Both the position numbers and the translations under genes were made by a program. From the NCBI RefSeq assembly GCF_020745735.1, contig NC_083438.1, forward strand, positions 10,381,867 to 10,445,866: DNA of 64,000 bases, in the 5' to 3' direction. Position 1 is the stretch's first letter. Each line of letters opens with the position of its first letter. A model generated the notes under the pieces. It saw nothing but the letters and a program-made list of their open reading frames with translations, was not told where the DNA came from and made no database searches. Positions 15,706-61,400 of the stretch are shown here, piece by piece. Origin of the DNA: Hemiscyllium ocellatum. Lineage: Eukaryota.

Positions 15706-17110
15706 TCCTGAGAAACAATTGATAAGTCTTTTTATCTTCTCGTTGTTTTCCTGTAAGAGTACAGCACCGACACTTTTATCACTTGCATCGATAACTACCT
15801 TGAATAGCTTTGGGTTATTAGTTGTCGCTAATATTGGAGCAGTAGTTAACACAAATTTCAGGCTGACAAATGCCTTCTGACAGTTTTACATCCGTTGAAA
15901 CTTCCTGCATTTCTACAGTAATTCAGTGAGTGAAGCAGCCACAGTTATAAGATTCCGTACAACATTCTGATAAAACCCACTCATAGCACTACCACATGCA
16001 GAAGAACCTCTGTTATCCGAACGTCAATTATCCAAATTTCAGATTATCCAAACAAGATCTCAAGGTCCTTTGTTTGCAATCAGATCAGTTATCCGAGTAA
16101 TGAGTTATCTGAACAATCAGTTATCCGAACAATTAGTTATCCCCACCCGTCTAATTTCGATAAGCAAGATTGTTTTGTAGTCGTACTGCTCTTTTGGTTG
16201 ATGAGGTCATCTGTCCATGTTCGATAACATGGTCCAGGAGAGTGATTTGTGTTTCCTTGAATTCGCTGTCAGCCAGGTTTATCACCAAGCCTGCCTCCCA
16301 AAGTCGAATGAATAATTTTGAGAAATTCTGCAAATTATCCTTCCATGTGTGACTCAAAACAAGGTCATCAATGTGTACCACGCAATTGGGTAATGAAGAA
16401 ATTACTTCATTGGTTAGTCTTTGAAATGTAGCTGGCACATTCTTCATACCACATGACATGACTGCAAACTGGTACAGTGCAGTTTGCTGTCACCAAGGCT
16501 GAAATTGTCTTCACGTTTTTGAATAAAAGTAGCTGCCAGCATCCATTGAGTAAGTCGTACAGAGAAATATAAGTTGCTTGTCCCATCTTCTCAATATGGT
16601 CTTTCAAACTTGATTTAGGACATGTATCAGATTTAGTAACTGCATGGATTATGCTAAGGTCCACACATAATCATTGGATATTATCTGGCTTTGGTACCAC
16701 TGATATAGGTGAGCTCTATTCACTACGACTGATTTTGATTATATTGTCTTTCAGCATATGTTCAGTCTCTTTCTGAACCTGTGCTAACCTCCAAAGGTTA
16801 AGCCTGTAGGATGTTGTTTGATTGGGACAGCATTTCCTCAATCAATATTATTTGTAGTGAGATTAGTAATTCCCAGGTTATTCCCACTAATCTCTCCATG
16901 TGATTATACTAACTCATTCAAGTCACTTCGATTTTCAACTGGCTGGTAACTCAGCAGTTTATCCAAATTTTCAGAACTTCGTCATTGATCAATTTAATTT
17001 TAAGAGACCAATTCACAACCATCTGAAATTGTTTCGTCACTCTGTGTTGTAACAGTAACACATTCTCTTTTGTTTTCCTATCAAAATAGCTTTTGAACAC
17101 ATCTCTTCAA
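15706..17110 (-). mobile_element. Decayed Gypsy LTR-retrotransposon pol fragment (RT, RNase H)
   Basis: NAVPIKQHP...SSPISVVPKPD...LCVDL; DLLNGCWQ; GMKNVPATFQRL...VHIDDL; RNase H CQKAFVSLKFVLTTAPIL...VIDASDKSVGAVLLQE. Multiple stops and frameshifts. Confidence 0.88.
15990..16165. mobile_element. Short MITE-like insertion within the Gypsy pol (~)
   Basis: Interrupts the RT/RNase H frame, starts cagaagaacctctgttatccgaac and contains several agttatccga units. Confidence 0.5.
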
Positions 17111-30143: not shown

Positions 30144-30152
30144 TCACTTAAC
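30144..30152 (-). CDS. IGHM: IgM TM2 exon (VK*)
   Basis: A 139-nt intron ends in TTTCTCTTTTTCAG|GTTAAGTGA, giving the KVK cytoplasmic tail. Confidence 0.88.
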   Translation of the reverse strand, partial: VK

Positions 30153-30291: not shown

Positions 30292-30419
30292 CTTCACCAG
30301 AGTGATGGCAGCGCTGTAGAAAATACTCAGGAAGAACAAGGTGATGAATGTGGAAGCAGTTGTCCAGATGTTGCTGTTATCATCCTCATAAACTTCAATC
30401 CAAGTGCGATCTATTGAAT
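30292..30419 (-). CDS. IGHM: IgM TM1 exon (128 nt)
   Basis: Acceptor TTCATAG|AT. With the G from the C-mu4 internal donor it reads DSIDRTWIEVYEDDNSNIWTTASTFITLFFLSIFYSAAITLVK, the CART-type Ig TM motif. Donor AAG|GTGAGA. Confidence 0.93.
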
Positions 30420-34024: not shown

Positions 34025-34333
34025 CTTTCTCCTTGTGGATGGAGTCTCTCATTGGAGTCGGTAGATTCTGATGGTACACCACACATTCAAAAGTAACACC
34101 ACTCAGCCAGGCTTCAGTCGACATGTCTAATTTGCTGATCACGCTGTCGGGATTCTGTCCAGGCTGGTCAGCAATCTCTGATTTCAGAGGCTTCTTTTCT
34201 TGTTTCCAGGTCACGTTGACTCCAGAAGGAAGATTGGACACAACGCAGGTTAACGTCACCGTCGCCTCCAGTAAGACTTGTTCTACTGGCGGTGGGAGGA
34301 TTTTAACGGTGTTAGGGTGGCACTCGGTATCTT
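34025..34333 (-). CDS. IGHM: C-mu3 exon (309 nt)
   Basis: Acceptor TTTCATAG|AA, then (E)[44 protein letters not shown]...[22 protein letters not shown], then donor AAAG|GTGAGT. Confidence 0.95.
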
Positions 34334-36291: not shown

Positions 36292-36597
36292 CCTGGAGTG
36301 CGGTGATGTTTTTACTTTGAATGTTCTCTCCATGATTGACCTGGCAGGTATAGACTGCGCTGTTGTACCATTCATCATAAGGGACCATCAGCCGACTCGT
36401 CACCGAGAAGTTCCCGTTTGCCTCACACACGGGAGACGTGAAGAAGCCAGAATACAAGCGTTGGCCATTTTTCAACCAACTCACAGAGATTGACTTCGGA
36501 TGGAAATCGATGATTGAACAGACTACGGTTGCAAACGTGCTGCTTGCGATTTCTTCACTGGAGCTCACAGTTAGGAGAAGAGTTGGCTGGAGAATAT
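36292..36597 (-). CDS. IGHM: C-mu2 exon (306 nt)
   Basis: Acceptor CCTAATTTTCAG|AT, then (D)[44 protein letters not shown]...[23 protein letters not shown], then donor CAGG|GTAAGA. Open frame, phase 1-1. Confidence 0.95.
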
Positions 36598-36719: not shown

Positions 36720-39700
36720 TAATTGTGCAGAGTGCTGGAGAAGCTGGGATCCACACAGAAAGATCAGCAGGACGATGTGAAAGGCTAAATTTATAGGACA
36801 CAGCAAGGGAGTCAAGGAGGCATAGAAACTAGGGCCGGTTAAATCAAAAGGGAGATAGCAACTTTGGATGGTATTCGTTTTCATGACAGAGTCTGATGAA
36901 CAAGGCAGATGAATTACCAGCATAAATCAGGAAATGATGCGGTTGCTATCGCAGAGACATATTGAGAGCCGGGCAGGAGTGGCTATTCAATATTCCAGGA
37001 TTTAGTGCTTTCAGGCGAGACAGGGAAAGATGGAAAATGCTTTGACCAGAGTGAACTGGAAGCTGGCACTTAGTGATAAATCTAAATCAGAGCAGTGTGA
37101 CACATTTAAGAAATAAATAAGAAAAGCATAGGGAGGACATTTCCCAGATAGCAGCTGCGTGGGATCAAGAATGCAGCGAGCTCTGGACACCAAAGGGCAT
37201 GGAGGTGAGATAAAGAGAAGCAAAGGAGGCTTCCGGTCTATACTGAAATCTGAAAGCAATAGAAACTAATATAAGGTACAGAAGGTGCAAGGGGAGTTTG
37301 AAAGAAAGAGGGATTAGGAGAGCAAAAGGGATCATGAGAAAATAATAGCACCAAAATAAAGGAAAATATTTTTAAAAGTTACAGGCTCATTCATAATAAA
37401 AGACTCATTTGGGAAACAGTAATGCCCATTAAATGTTATTACTGGAGTGGAGCCAGAGGATTAGGTTGTGCTCGAAACAAATGTGATGTGTCAGTGTTCA
37501 CTAGTAAAAGGAACAATGTGGGGACAGAAATCAAGGAGTGTTGTGATGTACTTTCCGAACTTAGGGCACATGATGTGATGTTTTGTGTTGAATTACTGGA
37601 TGAAAAGTGGTTATATTTCCAGGGCAGATGAAATATATACCAAGCTGTTGAGTGATGCAAAGGATGAAATAGTTGGGACGCTGACAATTATTTAGAATTA
37701 CTGTCTAGCCACAGCAGTTGTGCCAAGCGAGTGTAGATCAGCCAAAGTTGCACCGTTATGCAGGACGAAGGAAGGGATAAACAATGAAAACACAGATCTG
37801 TCAAGCTAATCTCAGTGGTGGGGAAATTATTGGAACTATTGAGAAGCAGAATTAGTCTCCATTTGGAAGATCAATCAACAATTTTCAGCATGGTTTTATT
37901 GAGAGAAAGTCATGTCTTAACAATTTGATGATAGTTTTCAGAGAGATCACTCGATGTACAGATGATAGCAATAATCAGAGCCAATGGGATCCGAGTTAAT
38001 TTGACAGATTGGATCCAGAACTGGCTGAGTGGTGGGAGCAGGGGATAATGGTCATAGAGTATCTGTGTGACTGGAAATCTATGTCTCGTGGTGTTTTGCA
38101 GGGATTTTGCTGATTTTCTTGCTGTTTCTCTTATATACCAATGATTGAGACTCGAATGTAGGAGGGTTATACAGTAAATTCACAGATGAAAGGAAAATTG
38201 TTATGTTGGTAAGTCATGAGCATAATGGCTTTAGATTGCAGGAGGATATACAAGGGTTGGTAATGTTGTGGTTCTGTTCGCCGAGCTGGAAGTTTTTGCT
38301 GCAAACGTTTCGTTCCCTGGCTAGGGAACATCATCAGTGCTATTGGAGCCTCCTGTGAAGCGCTGCTTTGATGTTTCTTCCGGTATTTATAGTGGCTTGT
38401 TCTTGCCGCTTCCGGGTGTCAGTTTCAGCTGTAGTAGTTTGTATGTGGGGTCCAGGTCGATGTGTCTGTTGATGGATGTTCTTGCCATTTCCGGGTGTCA
38501 GTTTCAGCTGTAGTGGTTTGTATATGGGGTCCAGGTCTATGTGTCTGTTAATGGAGTTTGTGGATGAATGCCATGCCTCTAGGAATTCCCTGGCTGTTCT
38601 CTGTCTGGCTTGTCCTATGATGGTAGTGTTTTCCCAGTCAAATTCATGTTTCTGGTTGTCTGAGTGTATGGCTACTAGGGATAGCTGGTCGTGTCGTTTT
38701 GTGGCTAGCTGATGTTCGTGAGAATTCACCACAAGGGTACACAGGAAACCAACACACACAGACCAAGTCCTAAACTATGAAAGTAACCACCCCAACACAA
38801 ACAAACGAAGCTGCATCAGGACACTATTCAAAAGAGCCACAACACACTGCAGTACACCAGAACTGCGAAAAGAGGAAGAGGAACACCTATACAATGTATT
38901 CGCCAAAAACGGATACCCACGCAACTTTATCACCAGATGCCTAAGAGATAGACCACGGAACGAGGACATGCCACAACCAAAAGGACTAGCCACACTACCA
39001 TACGTCAGGAGCGTCTCAGAACTGACAGCCAGACTACTGCGACCCTTAGGACTCATAACAGCACACAAGCCAACTTCCACACTCAGACAACAACTCACTA
39101 GAACAAAGGACCCAATAGCCAGCATGAGCCAAACTAATGTAGTTTACAAAATACCATGCAAGGACTGCACAAAACACTATATAGGACAAACAGGAAGACA
39201 GCTAACAATCCGCATCCATGAACATCAGCTAGCCACAAAACGACACGACCAGCTATCCCTAGTACCCATACACTCAGACAACCAGGAACATGAATTTGAC
39301 TGGGAAAACACTACCATCATAGGACAAGCCAAACAGAGAAGAGCCAGGGAATTCCTAGAGGCATGGCATTCATCCACTAACTCCATTAACAGACACATGG
39401 ACCTGGACCCAATATACAAACCACTACAGCTGAAACTGACACCCGGAAGCGGCAAGAACATCCATCAACAGACACATCGACCTGGACCCCACATACAAAC
39501 TACTACAGCTGAAACTGACACCCGGAAGCGGCAAGAACAAACCACTATAAATACCGGAAGAAACATCAAAGCAGCGCTTCACAGGAGGCTCCAATAGCAC
39601 TGATGATGTTCCCTAGCCAGGGAACGAAACGTTTGCAGCAAAAACTTCCAGCTCGGCGAACAGAACCACAACAACGGACACCCGAGCTACAAAGCTTCAA

Positions 39701-41763: not shown

Positions 41764-42069
41764 CTGGACATGGCATTTCTTTGGTCTTGTGTGACCCGCT
41801 GTGCTGAACCTCACAGTAGATTTTGCTGGGGCAATCTACCGCTGACCCGGGCAGGGTTAACTGGCTGCTCAGGGTGTAGGTTCCCTTCTTGTTTCTCACT
41901 GATGGGTAAGTCTTCAATCCAATCGTGATTAGCTCTCCACCTTTCTTCCAGGTTACCTTGGTGACGTCAGGGGAATAGTCCATCGCCAAACAACCATAGA
42001 TGACAGAACTGGTGTTGTGCTCCTCACAGGAGGAGACCAGTCCATAAAGCGTGGGATGAGATGGTGTCT
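41764..42069 (-). CDS. IGHM: C-mu1 exon (306 nt)
   Basis: Acceptor TGTTGTAG|AG, then (E)[101 protein letters not shown], then donor CCAG|GTACGT. Phase 1-1. Confidence 0.95.
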
Positions 42070-42404
42070 CTACAACAGAATGACCATGTTAGTTTCTGAT
42101 AATTTGACCTTATCAGTTACTCAAATGTATCCTCAGTTGTAAACGTTTGCCAGTATGCTCCCGCTGAAGTCTACAGCATAAATGCTTTTGTTTTGTTTCC
42201 TGCCAGTTGCTGATCATGATCATTGGTTCCCTCTTTAGAAACAGGCCCTCTACCTTGACCATTACCATATAATTTAGGAAGAAGAACATTCTGATCCCAC
42301 CCAAGTAACTGTTTGAAGATCTCACAACTGACACTTTCACTGGATTACAAGTGAAGAGCAGAGAAGTTTCACAAAATACAAACCAAGGAAATGCAGATTC
42401 ATCA

Positions 42405-42710
42405 AAATTCTACAGTGTGTGCAAACAGGCCATTTGGCCCAACAAGTCCACACTCACCCTCTGAAAAGTAACGCATCCATACCCATTCCCCTATCCTATT
42501 ACATTTAACCCTGACTAATGCACCTAACCTCCCAATCACTGAACACAACATTTGCAATTCCCCCAGCTTGCACATCTTTGGACTGTGGGAGGAAACGCAC
42601 ACAGATATGGGGAGAAAGTGCCAACTCCACGCAGACAATCGCCCGAGGCTGGAATGGAACCTAGCACTGTTAGGCAGCAATGCTAACCACGGAACCAGCG
42701 TGCTGCCCAA
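42405..42710 (-). mobile_element. tRNA-derived SINE (HE1-like)
   Basis: Reverse complement of the same family as 15436-15702. Confidence 0.8.
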
Positions 42711-42774
42711 TTAGGTACCGTACTGCTGGAAATACCCAACAGCTGGCAGTACCCCCGGAGAGAAATCAGAGTGA

Positions 42775-45400
42775 ATCATAGAACATTACAGCGCAGTACA
42801 GACCCTTCGGCCCTCGATGTTGCGCCGCCCTGTCATACTAATCTGAAGCCCATCCTACCTGCACGATTCCATGTGCGTCCATATGCTTGTCTAATGACGA
42901 CATAAATGCACTTAAACTCGGCGAATCTACTACCGTTGCAGGCAAAGCATTCCATAGCCTTACTACTCAATGATTAAAGAAAACACCTCTGACATCTGTC
43001 TTATACCTATCTCCCCTCACTTTAAAGTTGTGTCCCCTCGTGTTTGCCGTCCCCATACGTGGAAATCAGGTCCAGTGAGCCTTCCTCACTTATCAATGCA
43101 AGGCAGAATGTTCTCTCTGGGAGGAAGGTCACTGCAGCAGCAGCAGCACAGGCAGGAGCTGAGCACTGGGACGGGGAGGATGGCTGTCACAGCTAGCCTC
43201 ATGCCAATTGTCTGGAAGTTGAAACATCTAATTTACAATTATCTGAATTCTGGAGGCCTCTGAAAAATGCAGGACCATTAAAGTTCAGAGACTTTGGAGT
43301 GTTACAGCTGAGTATTTACGTAAATATGATTTGAGAATTGAACAAGTAATCTTTAACTTCACTAACTATCAAACTGACACGCAGTTCACCACCAAACGTC
43401 ATTTTTCAGACTAACCACTGCACTTACTCTGACAAAGCCTACCCTGCTATACACCCATTCATGCCCGGAACACACAACCCCTATCACACGAAACACATCT
43501 GAGGCAATCCATGTTGGTAGTGTAGCTGAGCAGAGAGATCTTGGTGTCCATGTACATGGATCCCTAAAAGGTTTCCAGCCAGTTTGATAGAGTTGTTAAG
43601 TAGGCATTCTTTGTGTTGGCTTTCATCAATAGAGGGACTGAGTTTCAGAACCACGAGGTTAGGCTGCAGCTGTACAAAACTCTGGTGTGGCCACACTTGG
43701 AGTATTGTATACTGTTCTGGTCACCACATTATAGAGAGAATGTGGAAGTTTTGGAAGAGTTCAGAGGAGGTTTACTAGGATGTTGCTTGGTATGGCGGGA
43801 AGGTTTAATGAGGAAAGGATGAGGGTCTTGAGGCTGTTTTTGTTTGAGAGAAAAAGGTTGAGAGGAGACTTAATTGAGACATAAAAGATAAACAGAGGGT
43901 GGACAGTGAAAGTATTTTTCCTTGAATATGATGGCTAGCAGGAGAGGACATAGATGACAGATGTCAGAGGTTGTTTCTTTACTCAGAGAGGAGTAGGGGC
44001 ATGGAACGCACTGCCCGTAACAATAGTACACTCGCCAACTTTAAGGGCATTTAAAAGGTCATTGGATAAACATATGGATGAAAATGGAATAGTGTATGAT
44101 AGATAGGCTTCAGATTGATTCCACAGGTCAGCGCAACATCGAGGGCTGAAGGGCCTGTACTGCACTGTAATGTTTTATATTCTATATTCCAGATGGACAT
44201 ATGATCTCAATTCCTTTCAGTCATTTACACTCCTGCCACCCTGCACCTGGCCCATGGTGAATCGGGCACTGACTGGACTTGGCACCATCATTTTCACAAC
44301 CTCTGACAAAAGCCCACTACCCAAGACATGACCTCAGCCCTTGATCACTGACCTCTCATCTTACTGAAGTCAACCTGTGCACATTGCATCCTAGCTCCTT
44401 TTGCATCTGTGCTTTACAACCTTCCATTTTGCCAGACTCCAAGCTTTGCATTTTGACAACACGTCCACCTGTCACTTCATTGCAGTGACCTTCCACCCCC
44501 GAAACATCCTGGCATTCTGTCCACCTCTACATTAACCAGACTGGCACCCAGCCCACATCTCCATAAACCAGCCTGGCAAAGCCAGACCTCCTGCATTTCA
44601 GCTCAAACTACCACTCACCTACCAAGCACAATTCGAACAAATTATCCTGTAACCATTACCATTTACCTTGATGCCACCTTTTGCCAGGCAGAGTGCACGC
44701 AAGCTTACCCAGCAGCCAGCCAACCAGCCTACCAGCCCAAACTCTCCCACATTCCCAATCTAGCCCCTCACTTGCTCACCACCTTCCAACTCTGAGCCTC
44801 CTCCACCATAAAGTCAGTTATTCATAAAGTCGTACAGCACAGAAACATTTCCTTTGGTCCAGCCCATCCATGCTGACCAGAGTTCCCAAATTAAACTAAT
44901 TTTACTTGCCTGCCTTTGGCCCATATCCATCCAGACCTATCCAGTTCCTGTAGCTGTTCAAATGGCTTCTAAATGTTTGACCTATCTCTGCATTTACCAC
45001 TTCCATTGCAGTTCATTCCAATGTTTGGACAGTTGCAACATGAAGCCCTAACTCCTGCACTCAGTGCTCTGACCAATAAAGGTACATGTACCAAACACCT
45101 TCAACACACTAGATACTTGAGACAACGCTTTCATGAATCTTTGTGTCTGAACCCTCAGGATCCTGTGTTTAGCATCACTACCCAGTGCCCTACCATTAAC
45201 TCTAAGTTGTGACCTGATTTGTCTTCTCAAAAAGCAACACATCGTATTCATTTAAATTAAACTCCATCTGCCACTCCTCAGCCCATTGGTCTAGCTGATC
45301 AAGATCTCATTGTAAGTTTAGATAACTTTCACTGCCAATAATGCCACCAATTTTGGCGTTACGTGCAAACTTACAAACCATGCCCCATTTAATGTTTTCA
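42775..45400. mobile_element. CR1 3' fragments in the J-C intron (42775-43060 minus, 43500-44210 plus, 44820-45400 minus) (~)
   Basis: ORF 43613-43822 (LQLYKTLVWPHLEYCILFWSPHYR) and characteristic tails. Confidence 0.75.
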
Positions 45401-45407
45401 TGGCTTT

Positions 45408-45582
45408 CAACCAATATTTCCCTTTTTCCCACATAACCAATATTGTCGCCTGTTTCCCTTTTTCCCACGTATCCAATACTGTAGCTTGTTTCCCTTTTTC
45501 CCACATAACCAATATTGTAGCCTGTTTCCCTTTGTCCCACGTATCCAATATTGTAGCCTGTTTCCCTTTTTCCCACATATCC
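45408..45582. repeat. 36-bp minisatellite, ~5 copies
   Basis: Unit ccaatattgtagcctgtttccctttttcccac(g/a)ta(t/a), visible as the 12-aa repeat GKRETGYNIGYV in ORF 45307-45576. Confidence 0.92.
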
Positions 45583-47332
45583 GTAGCATTTTTTTAAGGA
45601 TTGAAGAAATCTATCTCCTTATTGAAATCATTTAATCTTTTGTCCTCAATCAATTTCTGTGGTGGAGAATTCCAAAGGTACACCATTCTTTTGTTGAACA
45701 GTAAGCAATCAGGTTCAATGTTATCGGTGTGTTGGGAAGACTGGTGAGCAGCAAGATTAACGATGATCCCATGAATGGAATACCCTTCTAGAGGGGCCAA
45801 GTTGCCTTCTTCAGCTTCCATTTTGGATGCTGATATGTCCCTTCGACAGGATATTCCAAAATTGTGATCCTTGAGGATAAGGGTGCACATGCATGTAAAT
45901 GCTTCTTCTGAAAGCTTTCCTCCAAATCAGACTTTAACTTGACTCTCAACTATTTCCCTGCCCGTTTCCTCTTCCTCGATCACAGCCATGGGACTCACTT
46001 CCTAACGGCGCTGTGAATGTGCTAATACCACACAAACTTCAGGAATTCAAATAGACTGATAACAACTGGTTTCTCAAGGCGATATAAAAAGTCTGACGCT
46101 TCTACACCTGTCCAGAGATTCAAACAATCACTGGAATAATTGAAAATTATTTGAGGCACTTGTGTGTCTACACAAGATGGCATGGTTTCCTTCTGTGTGA
46201 TTTGACTGTGTTTTCACTGCATGGACAGAACTATTTCTTAATCACATAATGGGAATGAAGCTTCCCTCATTTTTAGCAAGGCAATCACACATCATATTTC
46301 TTTGTTCCAGGGAAGTATAGTGTTAAATTAATGGAACCTGATGATTGGGATGTTTCAATTGGAAATTGTCAGAGATTTAAAGCTTACTTTCATGAGCAAT
46401 TAATTCCAGCCTCAATGTGTCACTTTAAATACTCACAGAAATGTCTTTCAGAAATGGTGTCTCCCTTTGTTATGGGCAGTCGAATCAGTAAATCTGGGAT
46501 AGTTTTTGCTCGTTAATCAAAGGTGTTAAACACTTTTAGCCAAAGGGAGACCTATGGATTTAACTCATTGATGCACCATGATCTAAGTAAGTGGTGGAAC
46601 AGCTCGAGGGGCTGAGTGCCCTCCTCTTGTTCCTACCTTCCTATCATTGTGTCACTCATTAAGCTAGCACTGGCCGTGAATACTTTTTATTAAAATATTT
46701 CTACAAATTAATTGTTTCACACATTATTTTAAAAAAAGTCTGTTGATTATTTGGAACGGGATCATTGATATTCTCTATCTGAATGATCAAAATAACTTCC
46801 ATCCAATTACAGCAGCCACTGCACTCTGGAGTGTGTTGTTACTTCATAGTAGTTTCTTGTGAAACAATAGCTTGAGATCAGGGCGGTCAAATTCAATGAT
46901 TCTCTGATATTTAATATCTCTGAACGTTCGCAATTTGTTCAAATGCATCTTCTCTCTGAAGAACGGGTTTCATCGAACAGATCGTTTTTCAATTAAACGA
47001 CAAACTTTGAATGCTTTGAAAACCAAAATAAAGACAGAAATTTCTGAAGAAACTCAGCAGGTCTGCCAGCTCCTGTGGAGAGAAATCAAGGTTAACCTTT
47101 CGCATCCAGAGACCCCCCTCTTCAGCAAATTGTTTTCATGTTTTTGGCACAAGAGCTCAGACCTGTTGAGTGAGACAGTGATTACTTTGGCTTGACTCCT
47201 GTTGGAAAAGGACTCTTAGCAGAGGTACTGTAGTGTTGGATTCAGCGGAACCCCCACCGTACTGAACAATCAAATTCAGCCACAGCACTGGTGTAATATA
47301 AAGTAAAACAGCCTAGGTATAATCTCAACAAA

Positions 47333-49180
47333 CCAAAAGAGAAAATACTGGAAAATTTCAGCAGATCTGGCAGAATATGTAAGGAGAGAAAAGAGCTGAT
47401 GTTTCGAGTCTAACTGGATGGGTGAAACAGAGGCAAAATGGAAAACAGGGGAGAAGGGTAGCAAAGGAGGAATAGGAGAGAAAAAGGTGATGAGAGAGTG
47501 GGGAGAGAGAGAAAGAGGGATAATCAAGAAATAAGAGGTACAGAACAGTGGGAAAAAAAATAAAAAGATAAATAAAATTACGGAGCAGAATGAACACAGA
47601 GGGGTCGATATGGGATAATCATCTGAAGTTGTTGACTTCAATGTTGAGACCGGCAGACTGCAACGTGCCTAGTCGAAGATGAGATGCTGTTCCTCCAGTT
47701 CGCATTGACCTTGACTGGAACATTGCAGCAGGCCAAGGACAGATATGTGGGCATGGGAGCAGTGTTATGTGTTAAAGTGGCAAGCCACGGGAAGGTCCGG
47801 GACCTGACTGTGTACAGATCGAAGGTCCTCAGCAAAGCGATCACCCAGTCAGTGTTCTGTCTCTCCTATATAGAGGAAACCACATTGGAGCAACGAATGC
47901 AATAGACCAAATTGAAAGAGGTACAAGTGAAGCGCTGCTTAATCTGAAATGAGTGTTTGGGGCCTTGGATGGTGAGCATGGAAGAGGTAAATGGGCAGGT
48001 GTTGCACCTTCTGCGATTGCATAGGAAGGTGCTGTGTGTGATGGGAGAGGACTTAGGTGTGATGGAGAAGTGGACTAGGTTGTCCTGGGAGGGAATGATC
48101 CCAGCGGAATGCAGACAGGGGGAGGGAAGGGAAGATGTGTTTAGTGGTGGCATTGTGCTCAATTTGGCGAAAATGGTGGAGGATTATTCTTTGTATGTGA
48201 AGGCTGGTGGGGTGAAAGGTGAGAACAAGAGGGACCCTATCTTTGTTCTGGGAGGGGAGGGAGAGGATGAGGGTCCTGGCGTGGGAGATGGACCGCACGC
48301 TGTCTAGAGCCCTGTCAACAACTGTAGGTGGGAAGCCACAGTTGGAGAAGAAGGAGCACATAATAACAGCACCACTTTGGAAAATGACCTCATCAGAACA
48401 AATGCGGCGAAGGCTGAGAGCAAGGGATAGAGTCCTTACAGGATGTAGAGTGAGAAGAGCTGTCGTCCAGATAGCTGTGGGAGTCAGTGGGCTTGTAATG
48501 GATATTAGTGGATAGACTATTGCTGGAAATGGAGACAGAAAGGCCAAGAAAAGGAAGGCAAGTGTTGGAGATGGACCAGGTGAAGGTGCTGGAGGGATGG
48601 AAACTGGAAGAGAAGTCTATGAATGTTTCCACATCAGGACGAGTGCATGAAGCTGCACCGAAATAGTCATCGATGTACCGATAAAGCAGTTGTGGGAGGG
48701 GACCCAGGTAGGCCGGGAACAAGAAACGGCAGGCATAGCTAGATGACTACAGCACCCCCTTTGTCAGCAGGTTTGATGACAAGGTTGGGGTTGGACCTAA
48801 GGGAGCGAAGGGCAGAAATTTCGGAAGGAGAGAGGTTGGTATGGGTAAGGGGGCAGAGCAATTACTGCGGTCAATGTCCCGCCTACAATTGTCAATGAAA
48901 AGATCGAGGGCAGGAAATTGTCCTGGTGGGGTGTCCAGTTAGAGGTGGCATGTTGGGGGGATGTGAAAGGATCTGTGGAGCAGGGGAGTACTCTTGCCCA
49001 AAGAAGTGAGCACGAAGGTGAAGGTGACGGAAGAAGAGCTCAGCATCATGTTGTGTTTTGACAAAGGATCAGTTAGACTAGAAACGTCAGCTCTTTTCTC
49101 TCCTTACAGATGCTGCCAGACCTGCTGAGATTTTCTCTTTGGTTTCAGATTTCTGCATCCACAGTAATTTGCTTTTCTCC
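47333..49180 (-). mobile_element. Penelope-like element (Neptune-type) with inverted terminal repeats and 14-bp TSD
   Basis: TSD ataatctcaacaaa at 47319-47332 and 49181-49194. RT motif YRYIDDYFG (ORF 48393-48722), DRVPLVLTFHP linker, and GIY-YIG onset FTCTSFNLVYCIRCS. Ends 47333-47420 and 49075-49180 are inverted. Confidence 0.9.
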
Positions 49181-50721
49181 ATAATCTCAACAAATATGCT
49201 TGGAAAATAATTCATTCTGAATTAGTTATAAGTGATATTGTTAGAACAACAAGTCAAAAGCTGGGATTTCTTTGAGGATTTACTCCATTAACCCCAACTA
49301 GCAATGCCCTAAAGCTTGTGAACAAATATTGATTTGGAAAAAGATGCTAACCGCCAATGTTCTGCTAAATATCAAGTCAGGACAGCGATTGAATAGATTT
49401 CACAGTCCTCTGAGGGGAATTCCAACAAAAAATCAACTTAATCTGCTTTTCCCCCCAAATTAACCTGATAAGAGATGGTGTTACGTATCTCTCTAACAGG
49501 TTGTAAGTGCACACAGTCAAGGATACTACCACAACAGACCTGAACACAATGAGCTCGACACTCTCTCGGAGAACAAAGCCCACTTGTTAATTATGATCAT
49601 CTTCCAACAACCAGGGATTGTTCCAGAATGTTTACACAATGAAAGTAGCATTGCTGCAATTATCCAAGAATACTTTGTCAGCAGCTCGGAACTCGATGGG
49701 AACTACAGAGGATTAAAACTAGGAATTGCATTGCCATAAATTCATTGTCACTGGACTTCAACCTGGAACTCCCTTCCTCTTAGCCCTGTGAATGTTGCTG
49801 CACCAGATAGTTTACTTAGTTTGAAATAGATTAAAATGTTTTGAAGTGTATTATGACCGTTGTCAGTGACATTAAAGGTTGACGATAGATTTTCAACTAA
49901 CAAGATGCAAAGTAATTTCTGATTATATATTATGCCATTAAACATATCCCAGATAACTGAGACACAAAGAAAATATGCAGCACATTTCCCTCTGCCTCAC
50001 TCAAATATTCCTTGTTGTCAACAACCAATTTCAAAACTCTTTGCAGTCTGCCTTTTTTTCCTGAAGTGTTGGTTCTGATTGAAACAATTTAGTCAGGGCT
50101 CCAAATATTACATTTCTGGCAGAAAAAAAAGTGGTTTTGAAGCGCAAGATAAAATTGAACTGTCTGAGATTCAGATATCCAAACTGGACAATTTACAAAT
50201 GGTCAGGACCAGTTGACAAGTTAATCGGAGCTAGCACTGAAACAAACTGTATAACAGTCTTGATCCTAGCAGATACATCTGCTCAATTCCTCATGTCAAA
50301 TATATTCATTACAATTTCATATTTATCAGAGAAACTAACCAGAGGATTAATGTGAATGAGATTGTGTTCACAATGAACATAGATAATGATTGAGTCAATA
50401 AACTTAACAAGTCATTGTAATTAACAAAATTATTAAGGTGGGGTATATCGCCAATTAAAGCACAACTCCACAGGAAATGGATTATTCTCCAAATTATTTT
50501 TACATATTTTTAAAACATTTCTTAAACTGTGTAGATTTTGCATGCACTGCACAAAGCCAAGACTGCATTCCAGTGTGGAAATGCATTTCTGTTGAAGGAA
50601 CGAGGGCATTGTCTTTTTAGTTGCTTTGTAGTGTACGAATTTTTTTTTAAAAGATATGAATTGAAAACATGCTTCTGTCTGGAGTTGCCCACTTTAGCTG
50701 ATGTCTAAATAAATGTGGACA

Positions 50722-52850
50722 GTGCGCTGGCTTACTGGTGAGCACTGCTGCCTCACAGTACCAGGTACCTGGGCTCGGTTCCAGCCTCGGACGACTGTCT
50801 GTGGGGAGTTGTAGAGTTTACGCATTCTCCCCTGTGTCTGTGTGGATTTGCTCCCACAATCCAAAGATGTGCACATCAGATGAATTGGTCATGCTATATT
50901 GTCCATAGTGTTAGGTGCATTAGTCACCTAATGGGCCTGAGTGGGTAACTCTTTGGAGGATCGGTGTGGACCTGTTGGGCCAAATGACCCGTTTCCATAT
51001 TGAGGGAATTTAATTGAATGACCGTCACACTTAACTAATGTGAGCATTGCTACATTGCAATAAACCAGTCAAGTGTATTAACTAAAATAAATATTACTCT
51101 ATTTTCAGTGTTTGAATAAACAATGTGTTCTATTATCATTTCGTGCATGCCTTCTGCAAACTTGTGAACTCTGCATATGTCTGAATGCATCGATATAAAA
51201 TACATTCTCTGCATTCACAGCAAGTATTCCCCTGGTTTTAGAGTAGATTTCATCCAGCATGAAAACAGGCCATTTAGCCCAACAATTCCACACCGACCCT
51301 CTGGACAGGAAGTAGCCCACGCAGACCCACTCCCCCCCAACCTTTATTTACCCCTTACTAATGCAACCTAACCTATACATTCCTGAACAATATTTAGCAT
51401 GGCCAATTCACCTAACTTGCACATCTTTGGATGGTGGGACAAAACTGGACCACCCAGAGAAAACCCACACAGACACGCAGAGCATGTGCAAATCTCCATA
51501 CAGACAGTCACCCGAGAGTGAAATCGAACCTGGGTCCCTGGCGCTGTGAGGCAGTATTACTAACCGCTAAAAAGGCACAGGTGCAGATTAAATCTTTCAG
51601 TTCATATTTTGTTTTTTTATCCTGCAAATCCAATTTAATCAGGGATATAAAAATTAATTCATTCAAGTTACTTGTGAAACTGATCAAAGCAGTGAAATTG
51701 GTCTGTTCTTCATCGAATCGAGCAGAATTTCTAAATGGTCTTTGCCAATGATCTTTTCCAGCCAGAAAACTTGAGTGTAGTGTACAGCGGAATTGAACTT
51801 TTGAAATTCTATTGATATTTTTCGATGACTTGTGGACTGTTTAAAGACAGACCTTGTGATTGACTAGATAGTTGGGTTTAGATTAGATTAGATTACTTAC
51901 AGTGTGGAAACAGGCCCTTCAAGTCCCAACAAGTCCACACCGATCCTCCATAGAGCATCCCACCCAGACCCATTCCCCTACATCTAACAGTATGGGCAAT
52001 TTAGCACAGCCAATTGACCTAACCTGCACATTCTTGGACTGTCGGAGGAAACCGGAGCACCCGGAGGAAGCCCACGCTGACACGAGGAGAATGTGCAAAC
52101 TCCACACACCGACAGTCACCTGAGGTGGGAATTGAACCTGACTCTCTGGCACTGTGAAGCAACAGTGCTAACCACTGTGCCACCGTGCCGCCCACAGTTC
52201 TGAATTTGGATTCTAAGGAGTGGATTAGATTAATCCTTAATTATTACTTCTAAGTAAAAATTGCACCCGAAGGTATCTGTTTTCCCTTCATTTCCAAAAC
52301 CTTTGCAATTTGCCTTTCACATAATATTAGGCTTTATGAAATTTCAACTCACATGCTGATTGCATTGAATAAGGAAACTGGAGTGGTTCACTGTCGCCAA
52401 CCATGTAAATAGTGCAAAAACAATGTAGAAACCGGAAACAATTTCCCAAATATAACAAAACGTAATGTTACCCAAGCACATTCCCTCCCCAATAGAGCAA
52501 AGATCACCAAATGACAACACTGAGGAACACCAATGTGTTTGCAGCAGAACTAGCTCTGCAAACATTTTCAACAGAATCAAGAACATGATTTAACCTCACA
52601 AAAAAAAACAGATTGAAATCTAACAACACTGCTCAGTATTAATCAGGGGTAAATGTTGGGGAACGGGTCTGGGTGTGTTGCCCTTCGGAGGTTGGGTGAA
52701 TTGACCATGCTGAATTGCCCATAGTGTTATGTGTATTAATCAGGGGTAAATGTACCAGAATGGGTCTGGGTGTGTTGCTCTTCGGCGGGTTGGTGTGGAC
52801 TTGTTGAGCCGAAAGGCCTGTTTCCGCAATGGAGGTAATCTAATCTAGTC
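50722..52850. mobile_element. Cluster of HE1-like SINEs (50722-51003 plus; 51258-51567 minus; 51878-52193 minus; 52645-52850 plus, partial)
   Basis: tRNA-like heads, shared central domain and (aatct)n tails. Confidence 0.82.
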
Positions 52851-53327
52851 TATCAAACTAATGTAACTCTTGTGCAGTGCACAGTAGAGCAGTTGAAGGC
52901 ACATAATGATTAATCACTTTAAGGTCAAAACAAAATTAGTTCAATGGATAAATATTGCCACATTATAATTTTATATTATAGTAAGTTTAGTTTCAATTAC
53001 AAATCTGATCAATTCTGCACTTTTAGATTTTAGTCCCAAATTTTATTTTGAATGAGACTACTCAAAACAAACTTCTACTTAGTTTACAATTAGAACTGAG
53101 ATTTTTTTTAAAAGTCAATGCACTAAAAAGGATTTTTTTTCATTTCTCACACTTCCGTGTTTCTGCCTTAATTTGATTTTCAGACAGTTACAAACAGATG
53201 TAATGTTTTCAGTCAAACAGAAAATTATTGCCGTACAAGTTTAACAAATTCGGAAATGATTCAGGAAAAACAAAGAACTTCACAAATATTGGTAATTGAA
53301 ATGCAGATCAATTCCACAAACTGAATA

Positions 53328-53600
53328 AGAATCCAAGTAACTCAGTCTAACAGAATCAAGGAAAATAAATTCAAAATCCAATCCACTCAAAACAACAGAT
53401 TGAAATGAAAGATAATCAGAATCCAATCAATTCAATTCAACAGAATGAAATAAAATAATTTCAAAAGCCAATCAGCGCAATTCAACAAAACCAACTAAAA
53501 ACAAAGTCAGAAACAATCAATTCAGTTCAACCGTATCTTCTAAAACAAAGCCAGAATCCAAACAACTCAATTGAACAGGATCAAATAAAACAATCAACAG
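53328..53600. repeat. Degenerate ~45-bp A-rich tandem array (~6 units) in the J-proximal intron
   Basis: Units such as agaatccaatcaattcaattcaacagaatgaaataaaataatttc and aaaatccaatccactcaaaacaacagattgaaatgaaagataatc. Confidence 0.8.
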
Positions 53601-54130
53601 AATGAAATATAGCACAGCAAGAAAATATTATAACAATTTTTAACCTGCATGTCATCAAACAAATTAACAAAATAAATGACAAAATACAATTATGGTAAGC
53701 ACATTATGTATACAGGAATATACTCAAGAAATCAATAATGATATTTTCGCATATTTTAACCATGTTTGCTAATATTTTGAATATCTTTAAATGCTTAGCA
53801 TTTGTTGTCGATAATAAGGCTCACAATCAGGGTGTCACTGACATTAAACATCATTTATACCTTCCTGATTAAAATACTTTAGGTGCTTCAAGTAACCCAG
53901 CCACACAGAATGTCCATCTGATCAAAAAAAGAGATACACTGAGCATCTGACTCCATCAACACCATTTTAACTATTTGCTGAGCCTTAATCGAAGCCTATA
54001 ATCAGCTTGAACAAAAATCAATCTGAACCAAATCAAACTCAGCTCAGAATCCGAGTTTCACTTAATTCAGGAATTATTCACATGAATAGAACGTTAACAG
54101 TAAAAGTTACTCAGAAAGTTCAAGGGTCTT

Positions 54131-54250
54131 GCATTGAATAAGCATATGGAGGTTATAGCGCTAGTGTAGGTTAGGTAGGCTTTGGTCGGCGCAACATCGA
54201 GGGCCGAAGGGCCTGTGCTGCGCTGTATTTTTCTATGTTCTATGTTCTAT
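54131..54250 (+). mobile_element. 5'-truncated young CR1 3' tail inserted next to the JH splice donor
   Basis: Nearly identical to the reverse complement of 25987-26115 and ends in (tctatgt)n. gtctt flanks both sides (54126-54130, 54251-54255). Confidence 0.85.
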
Positions 54251-54257
54251 GTCTTAC

Positions 54258-54611
54258 CTGAAGTCACTGTCACCATGGTCCCTTGGCCCCAGTAATCAAG
54301 ATAGTACCCACTTGCACAGTAATAGATGGCAGTGTCTTCGATCTTCAGGTTATTCATGTCCAGCGCGAAAATGTTGTTTAAAGTGTCTTTGGACACAGTA
54401 AAGCGACCCTTAATCGTTGGAGCATAGTCATTGCTGAATGAATCATAGTACCAAAGCAGCCACTCCAGACCCTGTCCGGGAACCTGTCGGACCCAGCTCA
54501 TGCTGTAGCTGCTAAGATCGAAGCCGCTGGTTTTACAGATCAGTTTCAGACTGCCTGCGGGATAGCCAGTCTCTGTCTCTGGCTGAGTCAAAACAATCTC
54601 CGACTGGACAC
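54258..54611 (-). CDS. IGHV: Pre-joined VDJ exon (L2 + VH + D + JH), 354 nt, in frame
   Basis: [117 protein letters not shown]. Both V cysteines, the WVRQ tryptophan and the JH WGxG motif are present. Donor TCAG|GTAAGA at 54258/54257. There is no heptamer or nonamer between V and J. Confidence 0.97.
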
Positions 54612-54739
54612 CTTTAAAAAAGAAAACAAATAAACCATGAGCATGAATGCTCATGAAATGATGGCTGAGTCTTTTACATTCCTGCGGTAGACTAACATTG
54701 AGACAATAACAAAGAGAGACTTGAACAAAAAACACTCAC

Positions 54740-54788
54740 ATGATAAGAAAGTCAGTAACAAACTGAGAAAAGTTGCCGACACAATCAT
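54740..54788 (-). CDS. IGHV: IgH leader exon (L1), MIVSATFLSLLLTFLS + phase-1 split codon
   Basis: ATG at 54788, hydrophobic signal peptide, donor TCAT|GTGAGT. A 128-nt intron leads to the acceptor TTTAAAG|GT, which completes C-V-Q-S. Not called in the ORF track. Confidence 0.92.
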
Positions 54789-54873: not shown

Positions 54874-54880
54874 ATTTATA
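54874..54880 (-). promoter_or_regulatory. TATA box (TATAAAT) of the IgH promoter
   Basis: Plus-strand atttata is TATAAAT on the minus strand, ~85 bp upstream of the leader ATG. ETS-like GGAA cores (CAGGAAAC, GGCGGAAG) lie just upstream. Confidence 0.7.
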
Positions 54881-59739: not shown

Positions 59740-61400
59740 TTGGTGGAGTGGGAGAGAGAGTTAAGGTGTTCCACCACGGGGCCATGGGGTTGGTTGGCAT
59801 GGGTGTCCCAGAGATGTTCTCTGAAATGATCCGCAAGTTAGTGTCCTGTCTATCACATGTAGAGGAGACCACATCAGGTGGAACAGACATAGTGGATGAC
59901 ATTTGTGGAAGTTTGGATAAGTTTCTGTGGGATGTGGAAGGATCATTTGGGGCCTTGTCAGAGGTGAGGGGGGAGGTGTGGGTGCCAGGTTTTGCACTTA
60001 CTGTGTTGGCAGGGGAGGGTGACAGGGGTGGAGATTGGGCTGGTGGGGAGGGAGCATGGACCTGCTGAGGGAGTCACAGAGGGAATGGTGTCTCCGGAAT
60101 GCAGATAGGGGTAGGGAGGGAAATATACCCCAAGTGATGGGGTCTGTTTGCGGATGGTGGAAGCAGCGGAGGATGGTATGATGTATGTAAGGTTGGTGCG
60201 GTGGAAGATGAGGGCTCCCTATTGCGATTGGAGGATGGAGTTCAAGGGCATCGTCGACAACGTGGAGAGGAAACTGCAGTCTTTGAAAAAGAAGGTTATG
60301 TGGGATGTTTTATGGTGGAACTGGTCCTCCTGGGAGCTGATGCAGAGGAATTGAGAATAAGGGATGGCATTTTTTACAGGAGTTCAAAGTTTGTGAGAAG
60401 ATTTGTAGCTCAGGTGCTCGTTTTTGTGGTTCTGTTCGCCAAGCTGGGAATTTGTGTTGCAGACGTTTGGTCCCCTGTCGAGGTGACATCCTCAGTGCTT
60501 GGGAGCCTCCTGTCAAGTGCTTCTGTGATGTTTCTACCGGCATTTTTAGTGGTTTGTCTCTGCCACTTCCAGTTGTCAGTTCCAGCTGTCCACTGCAGTG
60601 GTCGGTATATTGGGTCCAGGTTGATGTGCTTATTGATTGAATCTGTGGATGAGTGCCATGCCTCTAGGAATTCCCTGGCTGTTCTCTGTTTCACTTGTCC
60701 TATAATTCTGTTATAGGACAAGCCAAACAGAGAACAGCCAGGGAATTCCTAGAGGCATGGCACTCATCCACAGATTCAATCAATAAGCACATCAACCTGG
60801 ACCCAATATACCGACCACTGCAGCGGATAGCTAGAACTGACAACCGGAAGTGGCAAATTCAATCCACTACAAATGCCGGAGGAAAGATCACAGAAGTGCT
60901 TGACAGGAGACTCCCAAGCACTGAGGATGTCACCTCGACAGGGAATGAAAAGTCTGCAACACAAATTCCCAGCTCAGCGAACAGAACCACAACAATTTTA
61001 CAGGAGTTTGGGTGGGAGGCGATGTAGCCCGGGTAGCTGTGGCAGACAGTGGGCTTTTAGTAAATGTTTAGTCGGTCACTGGAGATGGAGGTGGAGACGT
61101 TTAGGAAAGTGGGGGGGGGGGGGGGAGATGTTCGAGATGGTCCCTATGAAGTTTAGGTCAGGGTAGAATGTTTTAGTAAAGTTGATGAACTGTTCAACCT
61201 CCTCGTGGTAGCATGAGGTGGCGGTGATATAGTCATCAATGTAGCGGTGGTAATGGTTGGCAATGATACCGGTGTAGCTGTGGAAGATTGACTGTTCCAC
61301 ATATCTGATGAAGACGCAGGCATAGCTGGGGTCCATACAGGTGTCCATGGCTAACCCTTTTGAAGGAAGTGGGAGGATTGAAAAGAAATGTAGTTGAGGT
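59740..61400 (-). mobile_element. Penelope-like element (Neptune-type), decayed and interrupted by a nested PLE (~)
   Basis: ORF 61076-61348 has the RT motifs MDTCMDPSYAC.F..YVEQ and HRYIDDYI. The 3' part has the HVIDRT..SFQRTSLG remnant of the GIY-YIG region. Confidence 0.82.
60385..60995. mobile_element. Nested palindromic PLE 3'-end pair with 13-bp TSD
   Basis: TSD ttttacaggagtt at 60372-60384 and 60996-61008. Both arms encode IIGQ.KQRTAREFLEAWHSSTDSINKHINLDPIY in opposite orientations, with the turn at ~60698-60720. Degenerate hammerhead cores gca-ctgagga...gtc-tgc. Confidence 0.88.

Follow-up and report, generated by a model that had tools for sequence, protein, structure and literature searches.

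Antibody heavy-chain clusters that are partly or fully joined in the germ line are textbook features of cartilaginous fish (PMC5192425, PMC4279169), and germline-joined IgM clusters of the horn shark and of skates have been known from the work of the Litman laboratory since the 1980s (reviewed in PMC5192425, PMC4279169). According to Lee et al. 2000, germline joins are the work of a RAG-like activity in germ cells, TdT contributes little to them, and the joined genes are expressed mainly early in life (PMC2193156); the same three elements, RAG-like joining, little TdT, and expression in early ontogeny, are found in PMC2193156, PMC4279169, and PMC5192425. Two further systems from the nurse shark are close enough to merit comparison: IgM1gj (Rumfelt et al. 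2001), which has three C domains and lacks C-mu2 (summarised in PMC4279169, PMC5192425), and the NS4 light-chain genes, which arose by one-step VJ joins (PMC2193156).

Here we describe an IgM gene that shares with the joined clusters of horn shark and skates a four-domain constant region, V, D, and J elements fused in germline DNA, the coexistence of split clusters and partly joined ones (VD-J, VD-DJ, VDD-J) in its family, and a junction resembling a RAG coding joint. It differs from them in species (the nearest database V, from Chiloscyllium punctatum, is 81% identical, which points to a hemiscylliid or some other orectolobiform shark as the probable source), and is particular in its joint, which consists of V, 5 nt of D1, a full J, and no D2, and in its solitary position on a large scaffold. 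Like IgM1gj, its VDJ is fully joined in the germ line, so that the heavy-chain binding site would be predetermined and RAG would not be needed. IgM1gj is the neonatal IgM of the nurse shark, expressed preferentially in neonates and paired with a germline-joined sigma-2 light chain. In contrast to IgM1gj, it has an intact C-mu2 (36597-36292) and all four C exons, and these are 92-97% identical overall to paralogs in ordinary clusters, so that the gene does not form a separate subclass. Judged by its C-domain count, it is not of the IgM1gj type because C-mu2 has been kept.

The NS4 genes resemble the gene in having joints with little or no N addition (NS4 joints are trimmed or carry P bases), in being attributed to RAG-like recombination in germ cells, as we propose here, and in that joined genes nest among split ones, joining having been repeated (PMC2193156). 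The difference is that a heavy chain required at least two joins, in the course of which D2 vanished. Gene models that read straight through V, CDR3, and J (…YYCxx…WGQxTMVTVT…) are also present in the whale shark (Rhincodon typus, P0002), the starry smooth-hound (Mustelus asterias, P0010), and the cloudy catshark (Scyliorhinus torazame, P0019), two of the three (P0010, P0019) running on into C-mu1; these are 64-69% identical to the V region described here and have unrelated CDR3s, and thus are not orthologues.

Structure of the IgM cluster

The window, that is, the whole 64-kb stretch of DNA analysed, holds a single Ig cluster (Table 1), the V region of which is the sole VH match on its scaffold (C116, ~10.436 Mb). 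An earlier note on this DNA had described one uninterrupted 354-nt exon with an intact leader, TATA box, and splice sites, ending in an 8-residue CDR3 and JH; each of these elements was found in place on the minus strand, including the CDR3 ASGYYLDY (54315-54292, minus strand). The leader donor is GTGAGT, with its GT at 54739-54738, and the spliced frame of leader and V(D)J exon is open (MIVSATFLSLLLTFLSCVQS|EIVLTQ...). The exon encodes a complete VH domain of the typical shark IgM type in which Cys22, WVRQ, and YYC are present (Pfam V-set, E = 1.7e-16), and its splice from J to C-mu1 would read …ACTTCAG|AGACACC….

Table 1. Positions of the cluster's features within the window. L012 is the fully split cluster used as reference.
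Feature	Positions	Strand	Remarks
TATA box TATAAAT	54874..54880	-	Inside a ~450-nt promoter matching other IgM clusters
Leader exon, 49 nt	54788-54740	-	ATG at 54788; ends in phase 1
Leader intron, 128 nt	54612..54739	-	GT...AG, retained; aligns with leader introns of other clusters
V(D)J exon, 354 nt, open	54611-54258	-	AG acceptor 54613-54612; donor CAG|GTAAGA at 54257
V-derived part	54311..54611	-	Ends ...TAT TAC TGT GCA AG (…TGTGCAAG); L012 homology stops exactly at 54311
D1-derived TGGGT	54306..54310	-	Untrimmed 3' end (last 5 nt) of germline D1
J-derived part, complete untrimmed JH	54258..54305	-	48/48 nt identical to L012 J; ends CAG|GTAAGA
J-C-mu1 intron	42070..54257	-	First >=1.1 kb past the insertion colinear with other clusters
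~124-nt highly repeated insertion	54128..54251	+	Directly after donor hexamer GTAAGA; ends (TTCTATG)n
C-mu1 exon, 306 nt, open, AG/GT	41764..42069	-	C1-set, E = 1e-13; 92-94% identical to paralogs
C-mu2 exon, 306 nt, open	36292..36597	-	C1-set, E = 2e-18; 94-96% identical to paralogs
C-mu3 exon, 309 nt, open	34025..34333	-	C1-set, E = 2e-11
C-mu4 exon with secretory tail, stop, AATAAA	33177..33569	-	C1-set; membrane-form donor 33239|33238
TM1 exon (...NIWTTASTFITLFFLSIFYSAAITLVK)	30292..30419	-	
TM2 coding part (V K stop)	30144..30152	-	

The region 5' of the gene is 88-91% identical to the corresponding regions of other clusters, and the sequence around the TATA box (CCATATAAATCC) is shared without change by 11 of the 12 clusters aligned. 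The classical octamer ATGCAAAT was sought 5' of the gene and is absent there, the only related element being ATGTAAAG at 54996-54989, which is unconserved across clusters. The V promoters generally are devoid of the classical octamer. A perfect octamer (ATTTGCAT) is found instead ~60 nt 5' of D2 in split clusters; in L012 it is offset ~740 from YYC, between D1 and D2.

The statement in the earlier note that this VDJ heads an IgM cluster is borne out by four C-mu exons and both TM exons that lie 12-24 kb downstream on the same strand (42069-30144). The C and TM exons are all bordered by AG/GT in phase 1, each of the four C exons encodes a C1-set domain, and C-mu1 carries the SSC cysteine. Between J and C-mu1, the stretch from 54130 to 53115 is ~80-88% identical to the J-C introns of clusters L012 and L008. 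The repeat insertion at the start of this intron has a contig depth of >10^6 and loose contig ends at 54252-54255, and was placed by alignment with the uninterrupted L008 intron. It lies antisense to the gene, 6 nt past the J splice donor, and the same tail motif is seen again near 40.6 kb; its (TTCTATG)n end resembles the 3' tail of what we take to be a CR1-type LINE.

Other mobile sequences occur around the gene. Open reading frames of one transposon family (…HIDLDPIYKPLQ… / …HINLDPIYRPLQ…) lie at 38340-39597 and 60201-61027, in part as inverted copies, in the C-mu1 to C-mu2 intron and upstream of the cluster, and their motif KIPCKDC…YIGQTGR is reminiscent of the GIY-YIG modules of Penelope-like elements. 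A Pfam search of the large open reading frames at 38968-39597, 48053-48547, and 1964-2440 gave no match. Downstream of the cluster, the minus strand carries RVT_1 fragments at 350-844 and 16151-16459 (Pfam, E = 7e-8 and 1.5e-5, the second being under Pfam's cutoff), and the region is retroelement-rich.

Anatomy of the junction

Germline reference segments and RSS spacers were taken from the fully split cluster L012. In this cluster, V ends in TGTGCAAGATAC and is followed by an RSS of the form CACAGCG-23-TCAAAAACA; D1 is ATACTACAGTGGGT, with spacers of 12 nt (5') and 22 nt (3'); D2 is ATATAGCTGGAGTGA, with 12-nt spacers on both sides; and J is ACTATCTTGATTACTGGGG…TTCAG, preceded by an RSS with a 23-nt spacer. 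The spacer layout of a split cluster is thus V 23 / D1 12-22 / D2 12-12 / J 23. Against these segments, every base of the fused junction (TGTGCAAGTGGGTACTATCTTGATTAC) can be assigned to a germline segment of this genome's split clusters. V lacks its germline end ATAC (4 nt) and D1 has lost 9 nt from its 5' end, while D2 bases, N bases, and P bases are all absent. The D core, which the earlier note had left to be assigned by comparison with split clusters, proves to be TGGGT, the exact 3' end of germline D1. Its estimate of ~4 nt between V-like and J-like sequence was right in that the gap is short, and wrong in the exact length, which is 5 nt (54310-54306).

When L012 was compared with the window by BLAST, homology ran from 56139 to exactly 54311 and restarted exactly at 54305, with an L012-homologous flank that extends at least 1.5 kb 5' of the gene. 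The ~1.2-kb interval between V and J of L012, which holds six RSSs, D1, and D2, had no match anywhere in the 64-kb window, in agreement with the earlier observation that the exon has no RSS and no free D or J segments nearby. The contiguity of V, CDR3, and J and the absence of an RSS nearby would also be expected if RAG had not joined the segments or they had never been separate, as in a primordial unsplit V gene or a retrocopied rearranged transcript. We consider this the most improbable of the readings: the junction splits exactly into the V, D1, and J of split clusters, the gene nests in their tree, and its flanks are homologous to those of split clusters for at least 1.5 kb upstream, while a retrocopy is excluded by the retention of the leader intron, the 12-kb J-C intron, and all C introns, and by the absence of poly-A or processed structure.

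Of the marks expected of RAG processing, trimming is seen at V (4 nt) and at the 5' end of D1 (9 nt), whereas P bases are absent and the D1-J joint is flush. TdT would have played no part because N bases are absent, which is in line with the little TdT input that had been claimed, with most other germline joints of the genome, and with Lee et al. 2000 (PMC2193156). The proposal that the join was guided by short homology fares unevenly. It holds for V-D1, where the two segments overlap by 2 nt (AG); it does not hold for D1-J, where two untrimmed ends meet flush, unless the join proceeded via an L008-type D2J. A direct join of D1 to J breaks the 12/23 rule (22- versus 23-nt spacer), which implies at least one intermediate step. 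The fusion would have taken two steps or more, and the likely route is a V-D1 join combined with an intermediate that involved D2 and lost all D2 bases. For example, clusters of the L008 type have the form VD1 … D2J, in which D2J reads …GCTGGT|ACTATC, and a VD1 end TGGGT joining such a D2J (ATATAGCTGGT|ACTATC…) across the common GGT would produce the sequence seen here. Very probably, then, V, D1, and J were fused in the germ line by deletional joining of the RAG type, and head a complete IgM cluster.

Germline status of the joint and joined clusters across the genome

Four sequencing runs were compared with the exon, all of them genomic contig sets, of which X1, X4, and X5 represent three samples from one study. 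Contigs of these three runs (X1, 54276-54486, depth 29.1; X4, 54276-54484, depth 11; X5, 54276-54335, depth 10.2) span both joints unbranched and with 0 differences, and an adjacent unique contig in X1 has a depth of 30.2, which places the joint at local single-copy depth. The bridging contigs reach 30 nt into J, one under the 31-letter bridging criterion, and stop there because the k-mers of J are common to all clusters. While the samples of X1, X4, and X5 could be from one animal, these data argue for a germline feature and not a captured lymphocyte clone, since a somatic clone cannot reach full allelic depth and a split copy of this V is absent from the assembly. The claim that this heavy chain is joined in the germ line is supported both by the base-for-base V/D1/J composite at the junction and by the unbranched joint in three DNA runs.

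The fourth run (X2), from another study, yielded a 265-nt contig of depth 53 that matches V and D1 exactly (54306-54485); its remaining 85 unbranched letters fit no J, and the match breaks off exactly where the coding sequence of D1 ends. This contig could stem from an allele or copy in which the D1 RSS is retained, from a paralog that the assembly lacks, or from an artefact of the graph; if it continued past TGGGT as CACAGTG/CACAATG-22 nt-ACAATAACC, a VD1|RSS allele or copy would be meant. It is conceivable, though unlikely, that the last join (VD1 to J) is very recent and still polymorphic, X2 representing a surviving V-D1 precursor with the D1 3' RSS. Were this true, one locus would exist both one step from complete and complete, and a germline RAG event would have been caught segregating.

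The departure of X2 from the assembly precisely at the D1|J boundary could also be taken to mean that the assembly captured a somatic lymphocyte rearrangement, or a chimera, and that the true germline locus is split, particularly as shark B cells rearrange inside a single cluster, which would give exactly such an architecture. This is very improbable. The joint contigs are unbranched in three runs from three samples, at a depth equal to that of flanking unique sequence, which a single B-cell clone could not reach; the junction is without N bases, unlike the somatic shark joints in PMC2193156; and the rest of the 3.98-Gb assembly has no split copy of this V, its closest counterpart there reaching 82-84% identity in protein and no more than 91.5% in DNA.

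A germline fusion places the gene among many clusters in various states of joining. The genome contains well over 100 VH copies, of which 70 loci were fetched and 62 were classifiable by joining state. V is still followed by its RSS in 22/62, V and D1 are joined in 20/62 (with D2 and J joined too in many of these), V, D1, and D2 are joined in 8/62, and the remaining 12/62 are fully joined, the partly joined clusters together amounting to 28/62. All intermediate states are thus present (V|RSS, VD1-D2-J, VD1-D2J, VDD-J, VDJ). Most germline joints in the genome are without N bases, and one cluster (L053) has a 2-nt P addition at its joint. In a tree of V exons the fully joined state appears at several separate places, which, on this tree, indicates that it arose several times. 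The gene itself stands alone on a branch of 0.084 in a basal polytomy, and shares 89-91.5% DNA identity with every other cluster.

The joint GCAAG|TGGGT is also found in VD1-joined clusters (L008-10, L014, L030/31), and on the V tree its carriers, this gene included, fall into at least four separate lineages. Recent common descent of this joint was considered and rejected, as its carriers belong to different clades and the gene is alone on its 0.084 branch; the joint may be recurrent, favoured by the 2-nt AG overlap, or may have been spread by gene conversion.

Two groups stand out among the 12 fully joined genes. Three (L028, L050, L052) are out of frame or have a stop in CDR3; the short distance (~0.003-0.014) between L050 and its closest relatives, the VD1-D2J clusters L030/31, suggests that the third join in L050 is very recent. 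Another four, all in-frame germline VDJ genes (L058, L059, L063, and L064, on G000:C188 at 26.24, 26.30, 29.58, and 30.61 Mb), make up a divergent VH family with ~60% amino acid identity to the gene described here. These have a common CDR3 (GVYYSNWAVA) and a variant J (WGPGTMVSVTA), and differ among themselves in their V regions; the family looks like a joined gene that was duplicated after joining with its CDR3 kept.

Constraint, productivity, and significance

The V exon departs from the family consensus at 28 positions. In the frameworks there are 8 replacement and 9 silent changes (P = 0.005 against neutrality), and in the CDRs 10 replacement changes and 1 silent change. J has 0 changes in 48 nt where its flanks are ~10% diverged (P about 0.005). 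Changes private to the gene number 10 replacement and 5 silent, which is not significant (P = 0.22). The pattern fits a gene that would have been functional through much of its history, and leaves the join itself undated.

Its present productivity is a separate matter. The leader and VDJ exons, C-mu1 to C-mu3, and the TM exons have open frames. C-mu4 as assembled does not: seven consecutive C (33467-33461) cause a +1 shift, and a stop follows 17 codons on, before either the secretory tail or the membrane splice donor is reached. Of 39 paralogous C-mu4 copies, 37 have a span 1 nt smaller than that of the gene across the aligned range (spans and not letters were compared). The extra C may be a genuine mutation or may have been introduced in assembling the homopolymer, and because productivity hinges on this single base, we give the gene about an even chance of being a copy that is still productive. 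Searches among RNA runs of the species found none that contains the exon.

If the gene is productive, its conserved V promoter and normal splicing would yield a mu chain with the invariant CDR3 ASGYYLDY, for which RAG is not needed. As with the other germline-joined shark Ig genes that have been described, such a chain would precede the rearranged repertoire; it could diversify solely through somatic hypermutation and light-chain pairing. That the gene supplies IgM of fixed specificity independent of RAG, as the earlier note had it, may be entertained as a possibility.

The competing view is that the join is truly germline and the gene is a dead relic, a neutral by-product of occasional RAG activity in germ cells. 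This bears on function alone, as the origin is the same as in the germline fusion favoured above, and we rate it a serious contender at somewhat under an even chance. A relic would account for the +1 frameshift in C-mu4, the repeat insertion 6 nt away from the splice donor of J, and the failure to find an RNA run containing the exon; it has parallels in the 3 of 12 fully joined genes sampled in this genome that are out of frame, and in the horn shark, where transcripts of germline-joined heavy-chain genes were not detected (PMC2193156); and the 10 replacement and 5 silent changes private to the gene's branch do not depart significantly from neutrality. On the other hand, there is a single lesion in ~1.7 kb of coding sequence, and it lies in a homopolymer, where assembly errors concentrate. 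The other exons are all open and the splice sites all canonical, the promoter is conserved, J is identical to germline J at 48 of 48 positions, the frameworks have an excess of silent changes, and the C exons are 92-97% identical to intact paralogs.

The gene is real. Its class, however, was already known in sharks in the 1980s, about a dozen such genes are present in this genome, and taken alone the gene leaves existing knowledge unchanged. What it offers is a clean and fully mapped example, in which all junction bases are assigned, D2 has been lost, and N bases are absent. Its importance would rise if the join proves to be polymorphic or if the invariant chain proves to be expressed in embryos. 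A genome with every intermediate state is a good place to study the frequency and route of such joins. More generally, germline-joined antibody genes are evidence that RAG acted on the shark germ line, and are candidates for innate-like, RAG-independent antibodies of early life.
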